Of a DNA stretch of 64,000 nt, positions 1 through 64,000 are shown in pieces. The DNA lies in NCBI GenBank assembly GCA_964270895.1, contig OZ185445.1; one strand, 5' to 3'. The DNA is from Podarcis filfolensis. Taxonomy: Eukaryota. Within the stretch, counting starts at the first letter, position 1. The number at the start of each line of letters is the position of its first letter. The notes below the pieces were generated by a model. It did no database searches, was not told the origin of the DNA, and saw only the letters and a program-made list of their open reading frames with translations. Position numbers and translations under genes: made by a program.

Positions 1-1367
1 ATGGCTCCAAGTGACTCAAGAGACTGGATGAGGCACCACGCTATGGGGGAAGTGGGGGTGGAGAGGGGCCTCAGGATCTAGCAGAGAGGCTCAGGTGTGT
101 GTGTGGGGGGGGAGAAAACCCACTCATAACCCATAAAAGGCACTGAAGATGAGCAAGACCCATCCCATGATCCATCCCAAACAGAATGACACAGCAAAGA
201 GCTGCACACCATACAGAATCCCGGCTGCAAGTGGGCTGGTGCCAGGGGGTCCAGATGCTGCCAGGAAAGGTTCAAAGTCATCTCTGCCTGACCCCCAGCA
301 TCAACGAGGCCACAACAGGGAGCACAGCTAACTAGCCTGCTGGTTTTACAGACCGCCTTAAAAGATGCACCAAATTAGGAAGCAGCTGGGAATAAAATGA
401 TCCAGTGCCCAGGAACCTAAGCCTCCCTGCCTCTGCCCAGCGCTCTGAGGCTCTGAGAGCAAGGACATTCCCAACGCCAAGACATCCTTCGCTGCCTCTC
501 CTGGGAAGCAAAAGCAGCAGCAGCAGCAGGAGGAGGAGGGCTCTCCCCACCTGAGACTCCCAGGAGCTGGGATGCAGAGCAGAGCCTCCTGTTGCTTCAG
601 CTCCTGCTTAGGAATCTGGAGCAAGAGCCTCTCTGCTCAGCTCCGCCCTTCCCCTCCAGCAACTTTCCAGCAAGACTTTCTCGCCAACTCTATTAATTAG
701 AGAGTGCTTCTCTCCTGTCATGTCTCGTGACATAATCCCCTTTCAAGCACTGTTTTCCCTTATTTATAGCAGTTTTTCTTTGATTGTTTACTTTAATCAT
801 CCCACAAGCCCTAGTGCTGGGGGAATGAGTTTTAAGTTTTCCTGAGGGAGGGTTTCTTTTCTGCACTTTAATGAGAGCAATTAAATGAGAAAATGCAAAT
901 GAGGCCACTTCCTTCCTGAGGATGGCAGGATGAGCCCAGAGGAACCTACAAGCTCCCTGAGCCTCCCTGGGGGACCTGGATCCAGTTTCCCCAAGGGGAG
1001 CACCAGACGCAGTCTGCTGCAGCCCCACCCGGCCCTGTCTCTGGCATCCCAGAATAAGGGAGCAGCATTAAGACACATGGCAGCAGCAGAAGATACCCTG
1101 CAGTTGGCAAAACTGGCATTTTAAATGGAAGTCTGATGGCCGACAAAGGCCAGGATCATATTCTGCAGAAGAGTGTGCGGAAGGCAGGTTTTTAAAGGAC
1201 GATGGTTCTCAAAAGTCCCGCCATCACAACTTCCTGAGCTGCTCTCAGACTCGACTTTCTCGCATCAAACCCAAGCCCGCCCCTTCCTAACCAGGAAACC
1301 TTTCTGCAATGGAGCTTTCCGCGGCACCCGGGGTGAAAGGGATGCTCAGCATCGGGCAGGAACTCAC

Positions 1368-38958: not shown

Positions 38959-39158
38959 NNNNNNNNNNNNNNNNNNNNNNNNNNNNNNNNNNNNNNNNNN
39001 NNNNNNNNNNNNNNNNNNNNNNNNNNNNNNNNNNNNNNNNNNNNNNNNNNNNNNNNNNNNNNNNNNNNNNNNNNNNNNNNNNNNNNNNNNNNNNNNNNNN
39101 NNNNNNNNNNNNNNNNNNNNNNNNNNNNNNNNNNNNNNNNNNNNNNNNNNNNNNNNNN
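38959..39158. other. Assembly gap (200 N)
   Basis: A run of exactly 200 N, probably a placeholder size. Confidence 0.99.
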
Positions 39159-52321: not shown

Positions 52322-52412
52322 CTCTTCAAACTGAAGCCGCACTTTATTAATGGCTCGGATCCAGCGGGCTCTTGCAGCGGGAAGAAGGAGAAGTTCATTT
52401 TCATCAAGGTGA
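52322..52412 (-). CDS. UNC13B: UNC13B ubMunc13-2 exon, 91 nt, phase 2-0, with the Ca2+/calmodulin-binding motif (ARARWIRAINKVRLQFEE)
   Basis: Acceptor gtttttcttttttgcaAG; donor GAG|GTAGGG; WIRAxxKVRLQ is the known Munc13-1/ubMunc13-2 CaM site. Confidence 0.95.
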
Positions 52413-52885: not shown

Positions 52886-53182
52886 CTGCCCGGTGTCTTT
52901 GTGGCTTCTTTGGGCTCGTCCACTTCAGGAGGTAGTTGAGGTGTGGCACGCTCTTTCACCTTCCCCTCTCCTTCCCTGTGCACTTCCTGGGGCTCATGCG
53001 GCTCGCTAGATGGTGCAGGGCCCTCTGTCGGGTGAGGAGGCACAGCAGCAGGCACCCCTTCTGCGAGCTCGTCCTCGTGTTCGGAGCAGGGCACACTCCC
53101 GTGATATTGGTCCAGCTCACTCTGCTGAGAGCTTCCCTGACTGATGTTACAGGAGGAACCAAACTTACTACTGCTGGCAGGA
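52886..53182 (-). CDS. UNC13B: UNC13B ubMunc13-2 exon, 297 nt, phase 2-2 (S|PASSSKFGSSCNISQGSSQQSELDQYH...)
   Basis: Acceptor tactaatgtcttgctctctcacAG with a branch-point-like TACTAAT; donor AG|GTAGGT; open frame; homologous to mammalian [28 protein letters not shown]. Confidence 0.93.
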
Positions 53183-55211: not shown

Positions 55212-58200
55212 TCATGCTGTTTTGGCTACTGGCCTTTTCTTCCTGAGTGCCTCAGGGCTACTCTGCTCCGCCGGCTGCAGTCCAGTGGCAAGTGTTTCCG
55301 TTTCTGGACAAGGGACACTTTCCTTCTGCTCTACTTCATCCAGAACCTGTGTGGCGCCTTCTGCTGGTTCCTCCAAGGGGAGCCCAGGAGGCTCGCTGGA
55401 AATGGTGCTTGGCTCATCTTCCGTTTCTCTGGAGACCTCAAGCTCCAGCTCTTTGTTGGGCGCAACTGGAATGTCAGGCGTGGGACCATCGAAGCATTCG
55501 TTGCTCTTGCTGTCGGGCTGCTTAGAAGAAAGGTCTGAATCAGCAGCACTGTCAGCTGGCTGGTCAGAGGCAGAGAGGTTTGGGCTCCCATCAGCCCCGG
55601 TCACATCCACTGCTTGTTCCTCGGCTTTCGAGACAGCTTCTGGTGCCTTCAAATCTAGTTTGGATGAAGCAATTGGGGCCACCTCCTGTTTGGAGGAAGC
55701 TTTTGGTGTTGGCACATCTGGTTCCTTCTTGAGACTTGCCTCCTTGGCATCTTTCTGCCACGGAAATGAGAAGTCCAGCTTCTTTCCAAACACAGCACCC
55801 GGCGCGCCCTCTACTTTACCTGCTTTCTCATCACTTCCTCCACCAAACAGACTTGAGGAAAACTTGTTGAAGCTGGACACGAGGCCTGGCTCAGGCACAG
55901 GCTTGCTTGCCGAGGGCGGCTGTGCAGAGAAGAAGGAGCCAAATGGCTTGCTGCTGTCTGCAGAAGACATGAAGCCGAATTTGGGCAAAGTGGGCATGCT
56001 TGGAATTTCAAACATGGGCTTGGTGCTGCTGGCCTCTGTAGGAGCACTGGCTGGCTTGCTCTTACCAGCCAAACTGCTTTTCAAGGGAGCAGCTTCTGGG
56101 GCTGCTTCGCTCACGGTTAGAGGCTCTTTCTGCTCAGGAGGAAGATCAGGTTTTATTTCAGGGACCTTTTCTATATCCTGATGGGGCAAGTCATGGGCCT
56201 CATCTGCAGCAGCTTTGGGTTCCATCTCCAGGGTCTCAAACGTGTCTGGTGGGCAAATATCAACATCTGCCTCATTCTTTATAGTTACTTCTTCAGTGGT
56301 TAGTGAAGTATCCGTCAGTTCTGGCAGTTTCAGGTGTTCATCTTCCTCACCAACCTTGGGTTCCAGCTCATGTGTACTGTCCAAATCCATTTGGCCAACG
56401 TCTGTTTCTCCTGCCAGGCTCACTTGCTCTTCAACAGCAGGGACAGCATCATTTTCTAAGGGCTCCACAGGCACTTCACTCTTCTCCTGCAGCACCACCA
56501 TCTCAACTGCATCATGTACCTCTTGACTACACGGGGCAGCCTTCCCTGCTTCATCAGATGCCAGTAAGTTTGTGTCCAGCTGCACCACTTCAGGGCCCTG
56601 ATCCCTACTTGAGTCTAAAGTTTCTGAAGCATTAAGGGAGGATTCCAGACCATCTTCAGGTCTTCCACTGCTTTCAGCTTCCAATTCTGCCCTACATTCT
56701 TTTCCCAAACTCTCATCTGCTAAAACAGAAGGGGCATCTTGTTTCAAGTCACTGCTAGCTTCTTTCTCTGTAGGTTCAGCCCTAGAGGTTTGGTCCGGTT
56801 GTTTCAAAACACTGCCGGCATTTGTCCCTAAAAGTTCATCCCTAGAGGCTTTATCTTGTTTTGCGAGACCTTTACCAGGAACTGGGCCCACAGCCTCCTT
56901 TGCCCTGGAGCTCATTTCCTGGGGTTTTGAAGTGCCTGCGGTCTTCCCTGCAGGCTTTGAAAGGGTCTCATCTGTTGCTCCTTTAAAAATGCCAAAGAGA
57001 TCACTTGTAAATGCTGGAGGAGGCCCAGTGGGCAGGGAGGAAAGGCCGAAAAACGAAGTGCTCTTCTTTTGGGCACTAGGAGCTGCTGGAGTCTGAGGCT
57101 GGGAAAAGAAGCCAGATAATGTTTTGGTTGGTTTCATCTTCGTCATGAAGCTGGAAAACATTTCAACTGAGGAATCTAGAACTGATTTGTCAGCCTCAGG
57201 TTCTTTAGGTTTCTCCTGCAGGTTAGGTGTTGCTGCTGCCATTTGAGGGAGAGGCCTCTGGCCCTGAGCCTGCTGCTCTCCTGCAGTATTTGGGGTCCTA
57301 TCAGGTTGCTTGGGCTCCGGGGGCTTGACTTCAGGGGCGCTTGGTTTTTCTTCAGGTACAACCTCCTGTGAAAGGTCTCCAGGAGCAGGAGATGGCTCAA
57401 GAGCCACAGAGGTCTCATCACAAACTGGACCGGGCTCTGCCTTTTCAAAAGTCTCGTTCCCAACTAAAGGAACAAATTCCTTCTCAGAGGACATCACAAT
57501 ACCACCATTCTTTTCTGCATTGTCTTGCAGCTGCTCCTCTGGTTGTGGAATCTCCAGAAGGGAAGGTGCAATGTCTTCCTGCAGCGTAGGGACCTGAGAG
57601 CCAGGATCAGGATAGACTGAGTGGTCTTCTCTATCTGCACCATCATCAGGAGGTTTACTGGCCACAAAAGGTATCTCTCCCTCATTTTCCACTTCTGAAG
57701 CACTGGCCGCAGCATGCTCAGCCACGGGAGTTTTTAACTCACTTGCCTTGTGCTCCGGGCCAACAGCCTCTTGCTTTCCAAGTACTGCTTCTATAACACC
57801 CGCAGCTGCCTCTTTATCCTTCAAGCCCTGCTGTCTGGCAAGTCCAATGCCAGAGTCAACAGAAACACACTGCTTCATAGATGGCTTTGCGTCTGCTTGC
57901 CTTTGAGGCGGCCTTCCCAGGTTGCTTGCTTGCTGCTGAGGTGGCTTTGCAATATTCCCCTTGTCAGGAGCAGCTGCCGGTGGTTTGTCATCCAGGAAGG
58001 AGGTCAGGTTGAAAAAGCTGAAGCTGGAGCTGCTCTGAGGCACGTTCTTCTTTGCGGTGGGCCCTCCCGAAAAGAAAGAAGGCATCTTGAACAGACCCTC
58101 TGCTTCCAGGGGCTTGGCATTAGGAGCTGCTGGAGCTGGGGCAGGGGCTTTCTCTGGGGCACCAAAGAAGGAGGAGAAGATGCTCTTGCCAGCCGGCTGT

Positions 58201-61200
58201 GGTGCCTGCGGAGGCTTCGAAGGTGCTGCCTGTGACAAGCCAAAAGGCAGGCTAAACCCAGAATCCCTGGGTGGCTGACTGGCTTTTCCTGGCTGAGTTT
58301 TACCAGGTATGGCTCCTGCATGGCCTTGCGGTCCCGGTGCAACAGCTGGTCCGTGGGCATGCTGCCCTGGAGAGTGATTTGCTTGGTCCATTCGAGGGCC
58401 TGCCTGCATGGGAGGCTTGGGTTCTGCACTCCCTGCGGTGGGGATGTCCTCCTTCTTCACTTGAGCAGCTTCCTTGCCTACTTTCCCATGCTGTTCTTCC
58501 TTAGGGACTGCGGCCTTCTGGGCAGCTTCCCCACGAGCCTGCTCCACGGGGATTTGAGGAGCAGGAGTGCTGCTCTTACTTGGCTCTCTGCTACGCTGGT
58601 CCGCGTTGTCATTCAGTTTCAGGGAGGTGTGGGTTCCACTCTTTGGTGGAGTAGCAGCACTTGGTGGGGCAGGGGCTGCATCGACTTTGAAAAGATCCCC
58701 TATGGAACCAAAGAATGATGAAATGCCTGGGGGCTCCACTTTCTCCTGAGGCATTTTCTTCTCGGCTTCATTTTTCGGCAGATTTGGTTGGGGTGCTGGC
58801 GGTGGCTGTGGGGCTTTGTTGACCTGCGTTTTAAAGAAATCAAAGAAGCCGGGGCCTTGACTTTTATTGGGTGCTGCAGTTGTGGAGGAGTCTTCTCCCA
58901 GGCTAAGAATCTTGAGAGCACTTTTAAACAACGTGCCCTCAGCCTCCGTGGGCGCTTGGCTGGGGGCTGGCTGGGTTTTCTTGGGTTCATCCTCACCCAC
59001 TTTAGGTTTTTGTTGACTTGGGAGGGGAGCAGGCTTAACACTTTTATCCAGCTGACTGGTCTTGCTGTCCAAGGGACCCTGGCTTAGCTGAGAGGAAGAC
59101 CTCACCAGCTGAGGCTTTTTCTGAGAAATCACTGGCTTTTCATCCCTAACAGACTTAACTAATCTGCCTCTCTCTTTTCTCTCTTGTTCATGCTCAGTGT
59201 GCTGCTGGTTTTGCATATCCTCTCCTGTTTTCCTGGGTGGCGAAGCTGGAAGACCATCGTTTTTGTGTCCCAACACCACCGGTTCTCCTTTCTTCACAGC
59301 CGCGTCTTCCACTGTCTCATGAGCTTCCATACCCTTACCCATCAGGCCACCCAAAGCAGAGAATAAAGATGCGACTTTATTCAGAGGTGGCTTTTTATCT
59401 TCTTCAGTGGTTTTGACTTCTGTAACACTCTGAGATGCCGATGAAGGCTCAGGCTTAGCAGAAGACTGGAATATATGGAAACCAAACCGTTTTGACTGTG
59501 CACTTTCGGAAACTGTCACAGCAGGGGTCCTGTCCAGATGTTTGGGTAGAGCATCATCTTTTAGCCTCCCACTGGAAGCCACCCTGGAGTGAACTCTAAG
59601 GTCAAGGGTCAGGGGAGGCTCTTCTGAGTGCCACTCCATGTCATTCTCAGGCCTAAAGTCTACTTTGAGTTTTTGAAGTTTGTACCCTGAAAAGTCTAAA
59701 GGCTGCTCTCTCTGGTAATAAATGGACTCCTCAAACATCTGCGAAAAGGTCTCTAAATTCATGTTCATAAGTTGATCACTTCTCTGCAGAGCTACAGACA
59801 AATCAAGTGGTTTGTTTACAGAGTAATTATCCAATTGCTCCTCTTCAGCAAACCAGAATAACTCGTCTTCATTACTAAGAGGCACTTTGAAACCGCAAAC
59901 GGCAATCATGTCATCTTCCAAGACAGTGTTCTGCAAAATGCTCTGCGGATAATTATAATCCCAGTAGTCTGGGTAGGTGTAAGTGTCAGGAGTGCAAATG
60001 TAGACATACTGCCCAGTGGGGTCGGTGAGCAGAGAATAAACAAACTGACCGTCCCTGTACATGTAATATCCACAATCGCCATCTTCCGATGGCCACCACA
60101 CGCCCTTCTCAAGCAGCATCAGCCAGTCCTGGTACTCCTGGCTATAAGATGAATAGACAAAACTGCCATCCAGGCTCAAGGACTCCTGATCAATTAAGGT
60201 CCACATATTGCCATCACATGCTGACGAATAGCTTAAGTCCATGGGCATCTCTTCCAAAATATAGCTGCAGTCATCAAATGGAGGAAAGTTTCCATTCAGA
60301 GAATGCGTTGTCCACATTTCAGTTTCTTCTAGACCTAAATCTTGTAAGTCTAACTGATCAAACGATTCGTGGGACATGACACTGAAATCCATGCTCAGAG
60401 CATCAAAATTCGCATTTGACCTCCAATCCACGACATTGGCATTGCCATCTTTTTTACACAAGTTCACTACAGCATCACTGGAGTCTGGCCATTCCAGGAA
60501 CTCAGCCAGTGGGACAGAATTCTGCTGCAAGACGTAGTAAACTGGCAAGGAAACCTGGTGGGCGTTAAGAGAAAATGCTCCTGTATCATATTCCCAGTCA
60601 AAGCTAGAGTGGCTCCTTGTTTCCTCAAGAGCAAGATGCTGCTCTGAGTGGCCATACAATTTAGCATTCAGCAAAGAGGAATTGAGAAATTCATTTGACC
60701 TTTCGTTGAGAACTGCTTGATAAATATTGGATTCCGTAGGTTGTCTATAAAGAGTTGGCTGCCCCGATAAGTCTTGTATCTTTGGCTGTGAGCTTAAAGC
60801 ATTCTGAGAGGGGGGGTGCCAAGGGACGGGCCCATGTCCGTTCTCCATTTTGCTCAGTTCTGGGTGAGGCAAATGACCATTCGCCTTTGCCGTCTCGGTC
60901 ACTGCCTCCTCCACTTTTTCTTTTGGCCTCTGCATGAAGTTCTTTATGAAGCTGCCCGTCTCCTGTTTCCCCCCAGTGCTTTCTTGGGGACCGGGAGTCA
61001 CATGTGAGCCAACGGACTTGTCACCAGAACTAGTCTCTTCGCTCCTCTCAAAAAACTTCATTATGCCCAGAGAGCCTGATTTTGACTTATCTGGCATACT
61101 TTCGGTCAGGTTTTCACTTGAAGCAAACCTAAATAATCCAGAAAGTAAGCCAGCTGATCTGCTCTTCTGGCTGTCCGTTTCATTTTTAGCATTCGACTCT

Positions 61201-64000
61201 TCCGTGTGGGTTATGTGGTCTGAAGACGGCCGCCGGAAGAGGCCCGAGAGCAACCCCTGCCCTGGCTGTGGGGCCTTCTTCGGAGTATCATCCATTACCT
61301 GGTCCTCTCTGATTCCACCAGGAAGCACTGGCTTTCCTGCTGTAGTCTTTAAGTCAGGTTCTTTTGTGGGGGCTGCCACCTCCCCCCCGGATTTGGAATC
61401 TTTGTGGTCCAGAGCACCCATGCCTTTGGTATCATGATCCATGTGTGCAATTTTTGAAGTGTCTGAGGTACCCTGCTTTTTATCTCCACTTTTTGGTGCA
61501 CCCAGACCATCTTCTTTACTGGTTTCTTTCTTCCTCGCCGGCTCCTCTTTTCTCTGCTGTGCCTCGGGAACTGCCTGAGACTTTGACGAGTCCATTTTGA
61601 CAGCTTCCGTGTTGCTGCTTTTGTGACCCTCTTCAGCCTTTGCTGGCTTGCCACTAAAACTTGGTGGGGCAGTTTGATCTTTAGAAGCTGTCAGGTTTTC
61701 CACAGAAGCAGCTTTCAAGAAAGAAGTGAAAATTCCTGGCTTCTCTTTGTTGTCCTGCGGTGGTTTGTCTGAAAAGCCAAAACCGCTCAAAAAGGGAATC
61801 TGGAGCTTACCGGTGAAAGGGAAGTTGGGTTCGCTGCTTGCGGAGCTCGTTTTCCTGACATCATCTTCAGAACGGTGACTTTTCCCCAAGCCCGGTGGTG
61901 GCTCCTTTGGCACAGTTTCAGTAGCAGAAGAAGGGAGTAGCATCTGGCTGAAGGATTTCTTAAGTGGACTGAAAAAGCTCTCAGATGGTTCCACCTGCTC
62001 CAACGGCGGAGCGTTACCAGCCTCCTTCTTGGCTTCACTTGGCTTGTTTTCTGGCACTTTCCCTGCAGGTTGTGGACTTCTTGGCATGTCTGGGTGTTCT
62101 TTAACAACTTTATCTGGCTGACTTGTGGCCTGTGGCGCCACATCAGAAGCCTTCTGTGGCCCACTTGCCTGCTTAGGAACAGCCAGACTCTCAAAACTGG
62201 CTTTCAAGCTGAAAGAACTAACGGAGCTCGACAGCTTGCCAAAGATGGAGGAGACGGGGCCGCTGCTTGCGCTCGCTTCTGCCTCGCTCTTGCTCGTTTC
62301 GGGAGGCGCAACGTTGGTGGGTTTTGTCGCGTTGCCTTCAGCTGCCTTCCCACCTGCCTTGGCTTCAGAAGCACTGGCATGCGTGGCTTCCACCTTCACA
62401 GCCTCCTCCTGTTTTGCAGTCTCTTTTTTCGGTGCTTCCTTTTCAGAGAAGATTTTCAAAGGGTTGAACATGCCGAAGACGGAGTTCACAACTGAGCTGG
62501 GGTCCAGAGAAGGGGGCGGAGCAGCGTTTGCCGAAGCATCCTGGACACTTGGAGGAGCCTTGTTGTCTCCTCCTGTCTTTTCCGGGATGCTGGCCTTGGC
62601 ATCACTGGCTTCTCGCTCACGGCTACTCTGGGTCACAGAAGGGGAAGCTGCAGTGGGCAACCTGGCATCCGATTTGCTTTCTGCTTTCAGTTCTGGAGAG
62701 GCACCCTCAGACTTAGGCTTACTTGAAAACAGACTTGTGATGCCTCCCTCAGGTTGACCAGGGGCTTCAGATTTCTCTGGTGTGGGAGATACAAGTTTTT
62801 CAACTGAGGCTGTTAAGTGCTTTGTTCCTGAGCCCACTTTTTCGGTGAAAGAACTAAATAAGGAGCTGACCGTGTTCTTTACCCCAGACAAGTCTGGCAA
62901 TGCCTCTGTTATGCCTTTGCTGCCCTCGCTCTCCTCTGTGGCAGAAGCAGCTGGCTTTGCAGGTTCCAAAGGGGCACTTTCCTCCGCCAACTTATCAGCA
63001 CTGGCCAGTTTGGGAGAGGCACAATCGCTTGCATTTTTGCTCGCAGGAAGGGTTTCAAATTTACTAATCTCCTCCTCTTTTTCAGCTAAGTATTCAGACA
63101 CAGTTTCAACTAAGCACTGCAGTTCATCCATTGTGTCCACGTATTCTTCCGTTGGCTCTTCAACAGGAGAGAGGGTCAAGTCTTGCTTAAGAAAGCCGTG
63201 CTTTCCTCCTCTCATCCTATGTGAGTTTTTGTCCCTTGGTAACAGGGATATGGCACTTCCAGTACGGGCGTCAGTAAGGTCTCCAACATGGCGAACACTG
63301 GATTCACGCCATGCTTGGGAAAGTATTGCTATTTCTTCCATTTCCTCATCATCATCCGAAACTGGGGAGTACAGCAGTACACTGGACGAACAGCTGCCAA
63401 ACTCTTTAAGGGCACCCATTGGCACAAAAGAGTGAGCTGGCTGTTCTGAATGGATCTCATTTTCACCATCAAAATGGACTGATCCCGAGTCATGCTTTGC
63501 GCGTTGGTTAGCGGACAACTTGCCACTCTTGACTAGAAGGCCATTCTTGTATGGACGCAGAACTGGATATTCCGGTAACTGTTCTTCACTTTCAATGGGG
63601 CTGCTGCCCCATTTCTCAGTTTCATCATAATCAGGATATAGGTTATGTTCAGTTCTTGCTTTAATGCTGCCTGAAGAAAATCTCCGGTTACCACTGCTTT
63701 GCAGTATAGTTCGGTCGCATTCTTCAAAATTGTTATATCTCAGCTTCTTCTTTCTTCTCCTGTCTATTGTGTCATACTCCTCTGGATAGCAAGGGACATC
63801 AGGATTTCCCGATTCTGGGCAAGCCTTCCGTGAGTATCTTCCTCTTTCATGATGGCCAAAGTTCTCCCTTTTCGAGAGCCTCGGGCTCCTTCGTCCCTGT
63901 GAACTTCTAGTCCTGTGACTTTTTTCTAAAAAATCTTCTATTAACTGTTTGCCTAATTCCTCATAGTTCTCTTCACACTCTTCCTGTTCTTGGCCAACTT
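55212..64000 (-). CDS. UNC13B: UNC13B giant alternative exon (about 2,930 codons in window, open at the right edge), mostly low-complexity and probably disordered
   Basis: The 2768-aa track ORF begins at a TTG. Translating by hand, the same frame stays open from 63518 to 64000 (...VGQEQEECEENYE...EYDTIDRRRKKK...LRPYKNGLLVKSGK). Motifs EYDTIDRRRKKK and LSPVEEPTEEYVDTMDELQCLVETVSEYLAEKEEEI match my recollection of the long mammalian UNC13B isoform. The ORF ends in TGA at 55212-55214. Confidence 0.88.
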   Translation of the reverse strand, partial: VGQEQEECEENYEELGKQLIEDFLEKSHRTRSSQGRRSPRLSKRENFGHHERGRYSRKACPESGNPDVPCYPEEYDTIDRRRKKKLRYNNFEECDRTILQSSGNRRFSSGSIKARTEHNLYPDYDETEKWGSSPIESEEQLPEYPVLRPYKNGLLVKSGKLSANQRAKHDSGSVHFDGENEIHSEQPAHSFVPMGALKEFGSCSSSVLLYSPVSDDDEEMEEIAILSQAWRESSVRHVGDLTDARTGSAISLLPRDKNSHRMRGGKHGFLKQDLTLSPVEEPTEEYVDTMDELQCLVETVSEYLAEKEEEISKFETLPASKNASDCASPKLASADKLAEESAPLEPAKPAASATEESEGSKGITEALPDLSGVKNTVSSLFSSFTEKVGSGTKHLTASVEKLVSPTPEKSEAPGQPEGGITSLFSSKPKSEGASPELKAESKSDARLPTAASPSVTQSSREREASDAKASIPEKTGGDNKAPPSVQDASANAAPPPSLDPSSVVNSVFGMFNPLKIFSEKEAPKKETAKQEEAVKVEATHASASEAKAGGKAAEGNATKPTNVAPPETSKSEAEASASSGPVSSIFGKLSSSVSSFSLKASFESLAVPKQASGPQKASDVAPQATSQPDKVVKEHPDMPRSPQPAGKVPENKPSEAKKEAGNAPPLEQVEPSESFFSPLKKSFSQMLLPSSATETVPKEPPPGLGKSHRSEDDVRKTSSASSEPNFPFTGKLQIPFLSGFGFSDKPPQDNKEKPGIFTSFLKAASVENLTASKDQTAPPSFSGKPAKAEEGHKSSNTEAVKMDSSKSQAVPEAQQRKEEPARKKETSKEDGLGAPKSGDKKQGTSDTSKIAHMDHDTKGMGALDHKDSKSGGEVAAPTKEPDLKTTAGKPVLPGGIREDQVMDDTPKKAPQPGQGLLSGLFRRPSSDHITHTEESNAKNETDSQKSRSAGLLSGLFRFASSENLTESMPDKSKSGSLGIMKFFERSEETSSGDKSVGSHVTPGPQESTGGKQETGSFIKNFMQRPKEKVEEAVTETAKANGHLPHPELSKMENGHGPVPWHPPSQNALSSQPKIQDLSGQPTLYRQPTESNIYQAVLNERSNEFLNSSLLNAKLYGHSEQHLALEETRSHSSFDWEYDTGAFSLNAHQVSLPVYYVLQQNSVPLAEFLEWPDSSDAVVNLCKKDGNANVVDWRSNANFDALSMDFSVMSHESFDQLDLQDLGLEETEMWTTHSLNGNFPPFDDCSYILEEMPMDLSYSSACDGNMWTLIDQESLSLDGSFVYSSYSQEYQDWLMLLEKGVWWPSEDGDCGYYMYRDGQFVYSLLTDPTGQYVYICTPDTYTYPDYWDYNYPQSILQNTVLEDDMIAVCGFKVPLSNEDELFWFAEEEQLDNYSVNKPLDLSVALQRSDQLMNMNLETFSQMFEESIYYQREQPLDFSGYKLQKLKVDFRPENDMEWHSEEPPLTLDLRVHSRVASSGRLKDDALPKHLDRTPAVTVSESAQSKRFGFHIFQSSAKPEPSSASQSVTEVKTTEEDKKPPLNKVASLFSALGGLMGKGMEAHETVEDAAVKKGEPVVLGHKNDGLPASPPRKTGEDMQNQQHTEHEQERKERGRLVKSVRDEKPVISQKKPQLVRSSSQLSQGPLDSKTSQLDKSVKPAPLPSQQKPKVGEDEPKKTQPAPSQAPTEAEGTLFKSALKILSLGEDSSTTAAPNKSQGPGFFDFFKTQVNKAPQPPPAPQPNLPKNEAEKKMPQEKVEPPGISSFFGSIGDLFKVDAAPAPPSAATPPKSGTHTSLKLNDNADQRSREPSKSSTPAPQIPVEQARGEAAQKAAVPKEEQHGKVGKEAAQVKKEDIPTAGSAEPKPPMQAGPRMDQANHSPGQHAHGPAVAPGPQGHAGAIPGKTQPGKASQPPRDSGFSLPFGLSQAAPSKPPQAPQPAGKSIFSSFFGAPEKAPAPAPAAPNAKPLEAEGLFKMPSFFSGGPTAKKNVPQSSSSFSFFNLTSFLDDKPPAAAPDKGNIAKPPQQQASNLGRPPQRQADAKPSMKQCVSVDSGIGLARQQGLKDKEAAAGVIEAVLGKQEAVGPEHKASELKTPVAEHAAASASEVENEGEIPFVASKPPDDGADREDHSVYPDPGSQVPTLQEDIAPSLLEIPQPEEQLQDNAEKNGGIVMSSEKEFVPLVGNETFEKAEPGPVCDETSVALEPSPAPGDLSQEVVPEEKPSAPEVKPPEPKQPDRTPNTAGEQQAQGQRPLPQMAAATPNLQEKPKEPEADKSVLDSSVEMFSSFMTKMKPTKTLSGFFSQPQTPAAPSAQKKSTSFFGLSSLPTGPPPAFTSDLFGIFKGATDETLSKPAGKTAGTSKPQEMSSRAKEAVGPVPGKGLAKQDKASRDELLGTNAGSVLKQPDQTSRAEPTEKEASSDLKQDAPSVLADESLGKECRAELEAESSGRPEDGLESSLNASETLDSSRDQGPEVVQLDTNLLASDEAGKAAPCSQEVHDAVEMVVLQEKSEVPVEPLENDAVPAVEEQVSLAGETDVGQMDLDSTHELEPKVGEEDEHLKLPELTDTSLTTEEVTIKNEADVDICPPDTFETLEMEPKAAADEAHDLPHQDIEKVPEIKPDLPPEQKEPLTVSEAAPEAAPLKSSLAGKSKPASAPTEASSTKPMFEIPSMPTLPKFGFMSSADSSKPFGSFFSAQPPSASKPVPEPGLVSSFNKFSSSLFGGGSDEKAGKVEGAPGAVFGKKLDFSFPWQKDAKEASLKKEPDVPTPKASSKQEVAPIASSKLDLKAPEAVSKAEEQAVDVTGADGSPNLSASDQPADSAADSDLSSKQPDSKSNECFDGPTPDIPVAPNKELELEVSRETEDEPSTISSEPPGLPLEEPAEGATQVLDEVEQKESVPCPETETLATGLQPAEQSSPEALRKKRPVAKTA

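Follow-up and report, generated by a model that had tools for sequence, protein, structure and literature searches.

A conserved array of PxDLS-like motifs in the giant optional exon of Munc13-2, a candidate docking platform for CtBP-family proteins

A 64,000-nucleotide stretch of genomic DNA from Podarcis filfolensis (GenBank assembly GCA_964270895.1, contig OZ185445.1), hereafter the window, carries on its minus strand a giant optional exon of UNC13B, the gene of the presynaptic priming protein Munc13-2. Translation and a regular-expression scan located five short motifs within 292 codons of this exon, all inside one anciently conserved island that is predicted to be largely disordered (Table 1). 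We tentatively read the five peptides as short docking motifs, with sites 1 (PMDLS) and 2 (PLDLS) as putative docking sites for CtBP-family proteins and sites 0, 3, and 4 in a helping role; judged from sequence, this reading seems plausible to us while falling short of probable. A narrower version, in which the docking to CtBP or RIBEYE is specific to synaptic ribbons, appears unlikely. If the broader reading holds, the Munc13-2 island would be a new candidate for a known kind of system, in which a client engages CtBP/RIBEYE through multiple PxDLS motifs. An earlier note on the same DNA had proposed a cluster of CtBP/RIBEYE-type PxDLS motifs at these positions, and its interpretation is partly supported overall. 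The coordinates it gave were correct within 2 nucleotides (VVNLCKK had been put at about 60452-60472), with the motifs lying on the minus strand, and PMDLS and PLDLS are indeed canonical; PLDFS, TLDLR, and VVNLCKK, which had been counted in the same class, fall outside the consensus.

Table 1. Features of the giant UNC13B exon and its surroundings. Positions are those of the window; residues of the giant frame are counted from the TTG at 63518; identities are from the alignment of 53 tetrapod sequences, with flanks of ±10 residues. AF2, AlphaFold2.
Feature	Position	Strand	Residues	Motif identity	Flank identity	Evidence or remark
Giant optional exon, UNC13B/Munc13-2	55234..63998	minus				Homologues and flanking exons; open to the window end
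Conserved island containing all five motifs	59589..60626	minus	~965-1310			Alignment
Site 0, VVNLCKK	60450-60470	minus	1017-1023	0.71	0.59	Conserved; outside the CtBP consensus
Site 1, PMDLS	60231-60245	minus	1092-1096	0.90	0.60	Canonical PxDLS
Site 2, PLDLS	59796-59810	minus	1237-1241	0.98	0.60	Canonical PxDLS; best-kept site
Site 3, PLDFS	59688-59702	minus	1273-1277	1.00	0.71	Conserved; non-canonical Phe at position 4
Site 4, TLDLR	59595-59609	minus	1304-1308	0.88	0.41	Conserved; outside the CtBP consensus
Predicted folded mini-domain core: helix and four β-strands, fifth strand CGFKV	59883..60140	minus	1127-1177 (helix, four strands); 1208-1212 (fifth strand)			AF2
Conserved predicted helix between sites 2 and 3, MNMNLETFSQMFEES	59724..59768	minus				AF2 (model residues 316-324); kept in fish
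Candidate phase-2 GC donor, AAAAG/GCCAGT	55232..55233	minus				Sequence; exon end 55234; in-frame join to the exon at 53182
Next constitutive exon, SPASSSKFGSSCNIS..., SPASSSKFGSS...	52886..53182	minus				tblastn; resumption point of conventional ubMunc13-2
Exon with calmodulin-binding segment, ARARWIRAINKVRLQ	52322..52412	minus				tblastn

Motif counts alone are not decisive, because the CtBP consensus, which we take to be P-[LVIPME]-[DENS]-[LM]-[VASTRG] in ELM style, is a loose pattern, and conservation is therefore the real test. In shuffling experiments, this regular expression was observed twice over the whole exon with 1.2 matches expected. The strict pattern P[LVIM]DL[ST] was likewise found twice, with 0.03 expected in the whole frame (P = 0.0008) and 0.005 in a 401-residue segment spanning the island, while the looser [LMIV]D[LF][SRT], picked post hoc, occurred six times in the island against 0.24 expected. 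The giant UNC13B exon shows protein-level constraint, with an identity between the lizard and placental mammals of about 33% over the whole exon and about 45% over the island. Mean column identity among the tetrapods was 0.88 in the motifs and 0.61 in the rest of the island, and 11 of the 26 invariant columns fell inside the 27 motif residues (hypergeometric p = 6e-8). Searching 1.84 billion representative sequences with a profile brought up 68 proteins, among them named ones from sturgeon, bowfin, arowana (UNC13B), Astyanax, and the catshark Scyliorhinus, with the array present. Its occurrence from catshark to mammals dates the array to before cartilaginous and bony vertebrates diverged. Conservation against a divergent background was the check that had been set in advance for the motifs, and it came out in their favor, with peaks from shark to mammals. 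Standing as they do against variable, indel-rich flanks, these peaks may be counted for the docking reading.

The individual sites have varied to different degrees. Of 86 sequences, 83 match the CtBP consensus at site 2, which takes the forms PLDLS, PVDLS, PMDLT, PINLT, PMNLT, PIDLT, PVDLT, and PEDLT. These changes (L/V/I/M/E at position 2, D/N at position 3, S/T at position 5) appear to stay within the forms reported or expected to bind CtBP; PLNLS, PLNLT, and PLDLS bind, as do D-to-N and S-to-T variants (PMC2749851, PMC4231743), and PVDLT is the site in Piccolo (PMC10760060). Site 1 matches the consensus in 51 of 53 tetrapods, as PIDLS, PMDLS, or PVDLS with an invariant DLS, and in 7 of the 16 aligned fish, being canonical in shark, sturgeon, and bowfin. 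Site 3 reads P[LVM]DF[ST] in nearly all sampled vertebrates. Site 4 is x[LI]DLR in tetrapods and x[AIVF]DL[TS] in fish, and site 0 is x[VMI]N[LF]C[KQ]K in tetrapods and ALNL[ST]xK in fish. A sixth, lineage-variable copy of the motif lies at 60381-60395 (minus strand), reading SMDFS here, S[IL]DLS in turtles and birds, and LLDLS in catshark, and it is lost in placental mammals.

An AF2 model of the 401-residue segment had a mean predicted local distance difference test (pLDDT) score of 34, with only a helix and four strands modelled. All five sites scored below 50 in this model, whose alignment was shallow (53 fairly close sequences), which is consistent with their lying in predicted disorder as accessible linear motifs. 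When residues 1118-1232 were modelled alone, a mini-domain of roughly 50-90 residues reached a pLDDT of about 77 in its core. Its pattern WWPSEDG...GYY.Y...YSLLTD...YVY is near-invariant from catshark to mammal, and the two canonical sites flank it at a distance of about 140 residues from each other. Foldseek gave no structural match to the mini-domain in the PDB at E <= 0.001, and VIA-align in its wide mode reached a best Z score of 5.1, which is below what the tool gives as noise. No Pfam family matched any of three overlapping pieces of the giant exon, and a feature search of the ESM Atlas with the island returned no usable match. A fragment of CaV1.2 (4dey_B), the sole match of the profile against PDB sequences, had E = 1 and was regarded as chance. 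The mini-domain of the giant exon is new.

The assignment of the exon to Munc13-2, which the earlier note had made, was borne out by homologue annotation and by the flanking exons. The giant frame runs for 2,928 stop-free codons from the window end at 63998 and the exon is at least that long; since the frame is still open at 63998, its acceptor lies beyond the window edge. The open reading frame listing places the frame at 55212-63518 (2,768 residues), 160 codons fewer than the true open frame, as 63519-63998 is also open; on the other side, the read-through stop is a TGA at 55212-55214 (minus strand). A word-indexed protein search with residues 940-1340 yielded 131 relatives, the nearest named being Phrynosoma (80% identity) and Anolis (76%), and numerous of them, across tetrapods, are annotated as 'unc-13 homolog B'. 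The long homologue models, 4,100-4,660 residues in length, contain C2 (PF00168), C1 (PF00130), and MUN (PF06292) domains. In tblastn searches onto the window, the conventional 1,589-residue ubMunc13-2 of a toad leaves out the giant frame and continues at its residue 250 in the exon at 53182; from that residue onward it matches the exons at 53182 and 52412 and those from 18.9 kb down to 1.3 kb, and its sequence before residue 250 finds no match inside the giant frame. Together with the long models, the same searches place C1 and later exons between 18.9 kb and 1.3 kb of the window on the same strand. On this homology the gene is confirmed as UNC13B. Because the conventional isoform skips the giant frame, the giant exon can be placed as a cassette between the C2A-bearing N terminus, which the window does not include, and the calmodulin-binding site and C1.

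How the giant exon ends determines what it encodes. Both exons downstream of it require a phase-2 donor, which ruled out a phase-0 GT at 55229, and the last 490 nucleotides of the giant frame hold no phase-2 GT donor, hence our reading of the GC dinucleotide in AAAAG/GCCAGT as the donor. Its position agrees exactly with protein models of other species in both their long and short forms. Long models cross the junction as K/SPA(G/D)SSRYGSSC in box turtle, eagle, crow, wallaby, macaque, elephant, whale, cheetah, and squirrel. Short models end as K-R-P-V-x-x-x-A-stop in painted turtle, softshell turtle, birds, axolotl, and the present window, and run K-R-P-V... in hamster and Xenopus. Past the GC donor, the window itself reads R-P-V-A-K-T-A-stop (55212-55240, minus strand), and the R-P-V tail common to the short models reads as the donor sequence translated. 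A weak but conserved GC donor therefore implies two predicted proteins, namely a full-length giant Munc13-2 and a truncated protein of C2A plus tether that lacks MUN. Contigs from small assemblies of related species, whose RNA nature is presumed and not recorded, also cover the giant exon. Compared with the window they carry in-frame indels of 6 nucleotides at 56499, 3 at 56900, 3 at 58447, and 24 at 60803, and a fifth indel, of 2 nucleotides at 59197, occurs in a single contig of low depth (depth 4). That four of the five are multiples of three is consistent with protein-level constraint on the tether.

The proposed docking would work as follows. CtBP1, CtBP2, and the RIBEYE B domain have a surface cleft that takes up PxDLS/T peptides, and such peptides label ribbons in live cells (PMC10760060); sites 1 and 2 would enter this cleft as short strands, and the look-alike sites 0, 3, and 4 would add avidity. 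A proline is not indispensable: CtBP is bound by ALDLS at about 5 µM and is polymerised by two copies of it spaced 21 residues apart (PMC11187106). CtBP and RIBEYE assemble into tetramers or filaments, so a chain with several motifs would cross-link or coat them, as has been shown for Piccolino, RAI2, and ZEB. The giant exon sits between the RIM-binding C2A domain on one side and the calmodulin-binding site, C1, C2B, MUN, and C2C on the other; the full-length isoform would therefore put a CtBP/RIBEYE anchor on a flexible tether of about 2,900 residues, with the active-zone anchor at one end and the priming domain at the other. Read-through would instead give C2A plus the tether, a protein lacking priming activity. 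As to where this might happen, photoreceptor and bipolar ribbon synapses use ubMunc13-2 as their Munc13 (PMC11536687), and CtBP1 is present on ribbons according to the literature. The analysis shows where the motifs lie, how they are conserved, that two of them fit the consensus, that disorder is predicted around them, and how the exon is placed; partner, multivalency, and site of action are what we infer. A link between Munc13-2 and CtBP/RIBEYE had been put forward as not described before, and literature searches agree: they returned no paper linking Munc13-2/UNC13B to CtBP, RIBEYE, or PxDLS, the papers found on PxDLS, CtBP, or RIBEYE did not mention Munc13 in this context, and a search with several motif variants together found nothing. 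Searches for a giant exon, a long isoform, or the interactome likewise gave no paper describing the giant UNC13B exon.

Several observations weigh against CtBP-family docking. Two of the five sites fit the CtBP consensus, whereas sites 0, 3, and 4 do not, and the strictly conserved Phe at position 4 of site 3 corresponds to no known CtBP variant. Site 1 is degenerate or lost in numerous teleosts, and the giant exon contains no RRT-type second CtBP motif. The substitution spectrum of site 2 is weakly diagnostic, because D/N, S/T, and L/V/I/M exchanges are also the most frequent conservative substitutions. The conserved helix and the fixed 36-residue spacing between sites 2 and 3, from shark to mammal, point to an interface larger than a CtBP linear motif. 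In addition, tethering the priming machinery requires splicing onto C1-C2B-MUN and thus depends on the weak GC donor. The presumed-RNA contigs read straight through this donor, one of them collinear across it and continuing for at least 230 nucleotides up to the edge of the compared stretch, and therefore favor the truncated form; in this lizard, the evidence for a product without MUN is at least as good as that for the full-length protein.

In the main rival explanation, the motifs bind another partner or self-associate and the resemblance to PxDLS is coincidental, a possibility that we take seriously and nevertheless regard as rather doubtful. In one form of it, the β mini-domain would capture xΦDΦ[ST] strands by β-augmentation, leading to oligomerisation or condensation of the giant isoform; mini-domain and motifs are co-conserved within a single island from shark to mammal, although AF2 docked none of the motifs onto the mini-domain. 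In the other, sites 2 and 3 with the helix between them, a module of about 55 residues (59688-59810, minus strand), would fold on another partner. Of 88 sequences, 76 (46 of 53 tetrapods and 30 of 35 fish) keep exactly 36 residues from the start of site 2 to the start of site 3, a spacing unchanged for about 450 million years across a linker that is conserved and predicted to be helical. Conservation also runs past the two pentapeptides, as PLDLSxA[LFY]x[KR]G and P[LV]DF[ST]xY[KR]LxK, and three of the five sites lie outside the CtBP consensus. Against both forms, we know of no reader of P-Φ-D-L-S/T besides CtBP, and families, folds, and solved structures yielded no lead. Other kinds of motif, namely SUMO-interaction motifs, the clathrin box, TRAF6, and pLxIS, were set aside because of a misfit at the proline and aspartate positions.

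That the whole island is instead a folded domain, which AF2 fails to model from a shallow, vertebrate-only alignment and in which the motifs are buried β-strands or turns, strikes us as very unlikely. The island is aromatic-rich, part of it does fold in the AF2 model, and a low pLDDT is weak evidence of disorder because the alignment held only 53 fairly close sequences. However, conservation comes in peaks of 5-10 residues between variable, indel-rich stretches, with 58-154 residues from site 0 to site 1 and 134-160 from site 1 to site 2; teleosts may lose site 1 with the core intact, and the motifs are polar and proline-flanked. Chance occurrence of PxDLS-like strings in a low-complexity protein of 2,900 residues, with which the ELM-style count would agree, is effectively refuted, since the strict pattern is so rarely expected, both consensus matches and the three look-alikes cluster in a single conserved island, and the motifs have stayed near-invariant over some 450 million years.

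Bassoon and Piccolo are known for anchoring CtBP1 at conventional synapses, and the arrangement proposed for Munc13-2 can be set beside theirs and beside other PxDLS systems. As active-zone scaffolds they use a PxDLT site (PVDLT; PMC10760060), a likeness limited by theirs being a single site on a carrier without a priming domain. Piccolino, the ribbon-specific isoform of Piccolo (PMC10760060), is closer, being likewise a giant, mostly disordered presynaptic isoform that arises by alternative processing and carries several conserved motifs with spacers of tens of residues. Its seven conserved PxDLS-type motifs, verified by isothermal titration calorimetry and separated by spacers of about 25 and 45 residues, bundle filaments of the RIBEYE B domain (bioRxiv 10.64898/2026.04.28.721253). 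In contrast to these periodic, verified motifs, Munc13-2 offers a pair of canonical candidate sites, some 140 residues from each other on either side of the mini-domain, and three non-canonical ones. RAI2, with its tandem ALDLS motifs (PMC11187106), shares the feature of at least two CtBP-type motifs on a disordered chain, and there a linker of 21 residues and bivalency cross-link CtBP tetramers. RAI2 is nuclear and its linker unstructured, unlike Munc13-2, in which a conserved helix links sites 2 and 3 and Phe occupies position 4 of site 3. The spacers between sites 2 and 3 and between sites 3 and 4 (31 and 26 residues, the latter corresponding to a start-to-start distance of 31 in most tetrapods) appear to resemble those of RAI2 and Piccolino and lie within the range of a flexible spacer (about 20-45 residues), yet of these sites only site 2 is canonical and the first spacer is helical. 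ZEB1, with PLNLS-PLDLS-PLNLS (PMC2749851), offers a precedent for a strong central PLDLS and weaker auxiliary variants that add avidity within about 100 residues; it differs in being a transcription factor whose auxiliary sites still fit the consensus. Finally, the conventional ubMunc13-2 and bMunc13-2 are products of the same gene with the C1-C2B-MUN-C2C body in common, ubMunc13-2 also sharing the C2A N terminus, but both skip the giant exon and hence lack the island and its motifs.

Docking of Munc13-2 to CtBP/RIBEYE would bear on how vesicles become release-ready on synaptic ribbons and on why the ribbon synapses of photoreceptors are only mildly affected when Munc13-2 is lost. A second presynaptic giant with such motifs, here attached to a priming protein and kept since the ancestor of sharks and tetrapods, makes a concrete and testable hypothesis. 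Whatever the partner, the locus offers a constrained giant exon, a new mini-domain, and two very different predicted products. A bolder extension, which we consider quite unlikely, is that giant Munc13-2 is a Piccolino-like filament bearing a priming enzyme, in which C2A would bind RIM at the active zone, the array would hold RIBEYE or CtBP1, about 25 Phe-rich motifs would hold vesicles, and MUN would prime them. If true, priming on the ribbon would be physically coupled to the scaffold in all jawed vertebrates, with the truncated form serving either as a regulated competitor or as a sink for CtBP in the cytoplasm.

The tether is rich in Pro, Glu, Ala, and Ser, and spread over it (55215-63518, minus strand) are about 25 short Ser/Gly/Lys-rich motifs with paired Phe/Leu, for example SLFSSF, SVFGMF, SFFGSIG, GLFRF, FFDFF, SIFSSFF, and FGIFK. 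These could be amphipathic elements that bind membranes or vesicles, comparable with the lipid-tether model for Piccolino (PMC13394108). Two further short elements lie among the five sites. A conserved (Y)ESFDQL element at 60351-60377 (minus strand) is acidic and aromatic, resembles an Atg8/LC3-interaction motif, and is kept across tetrapods. KVDF at 59655-59666 (minus strand, residues 1285-1288) matches the PP1-docking motif RVxF in sauropsids and amphibians and is not kept in mammals. Elsewhere in the window, a run of 200 N at 38959-39158, which the analysis left untouched, marks an assembly gap or masked sequence.

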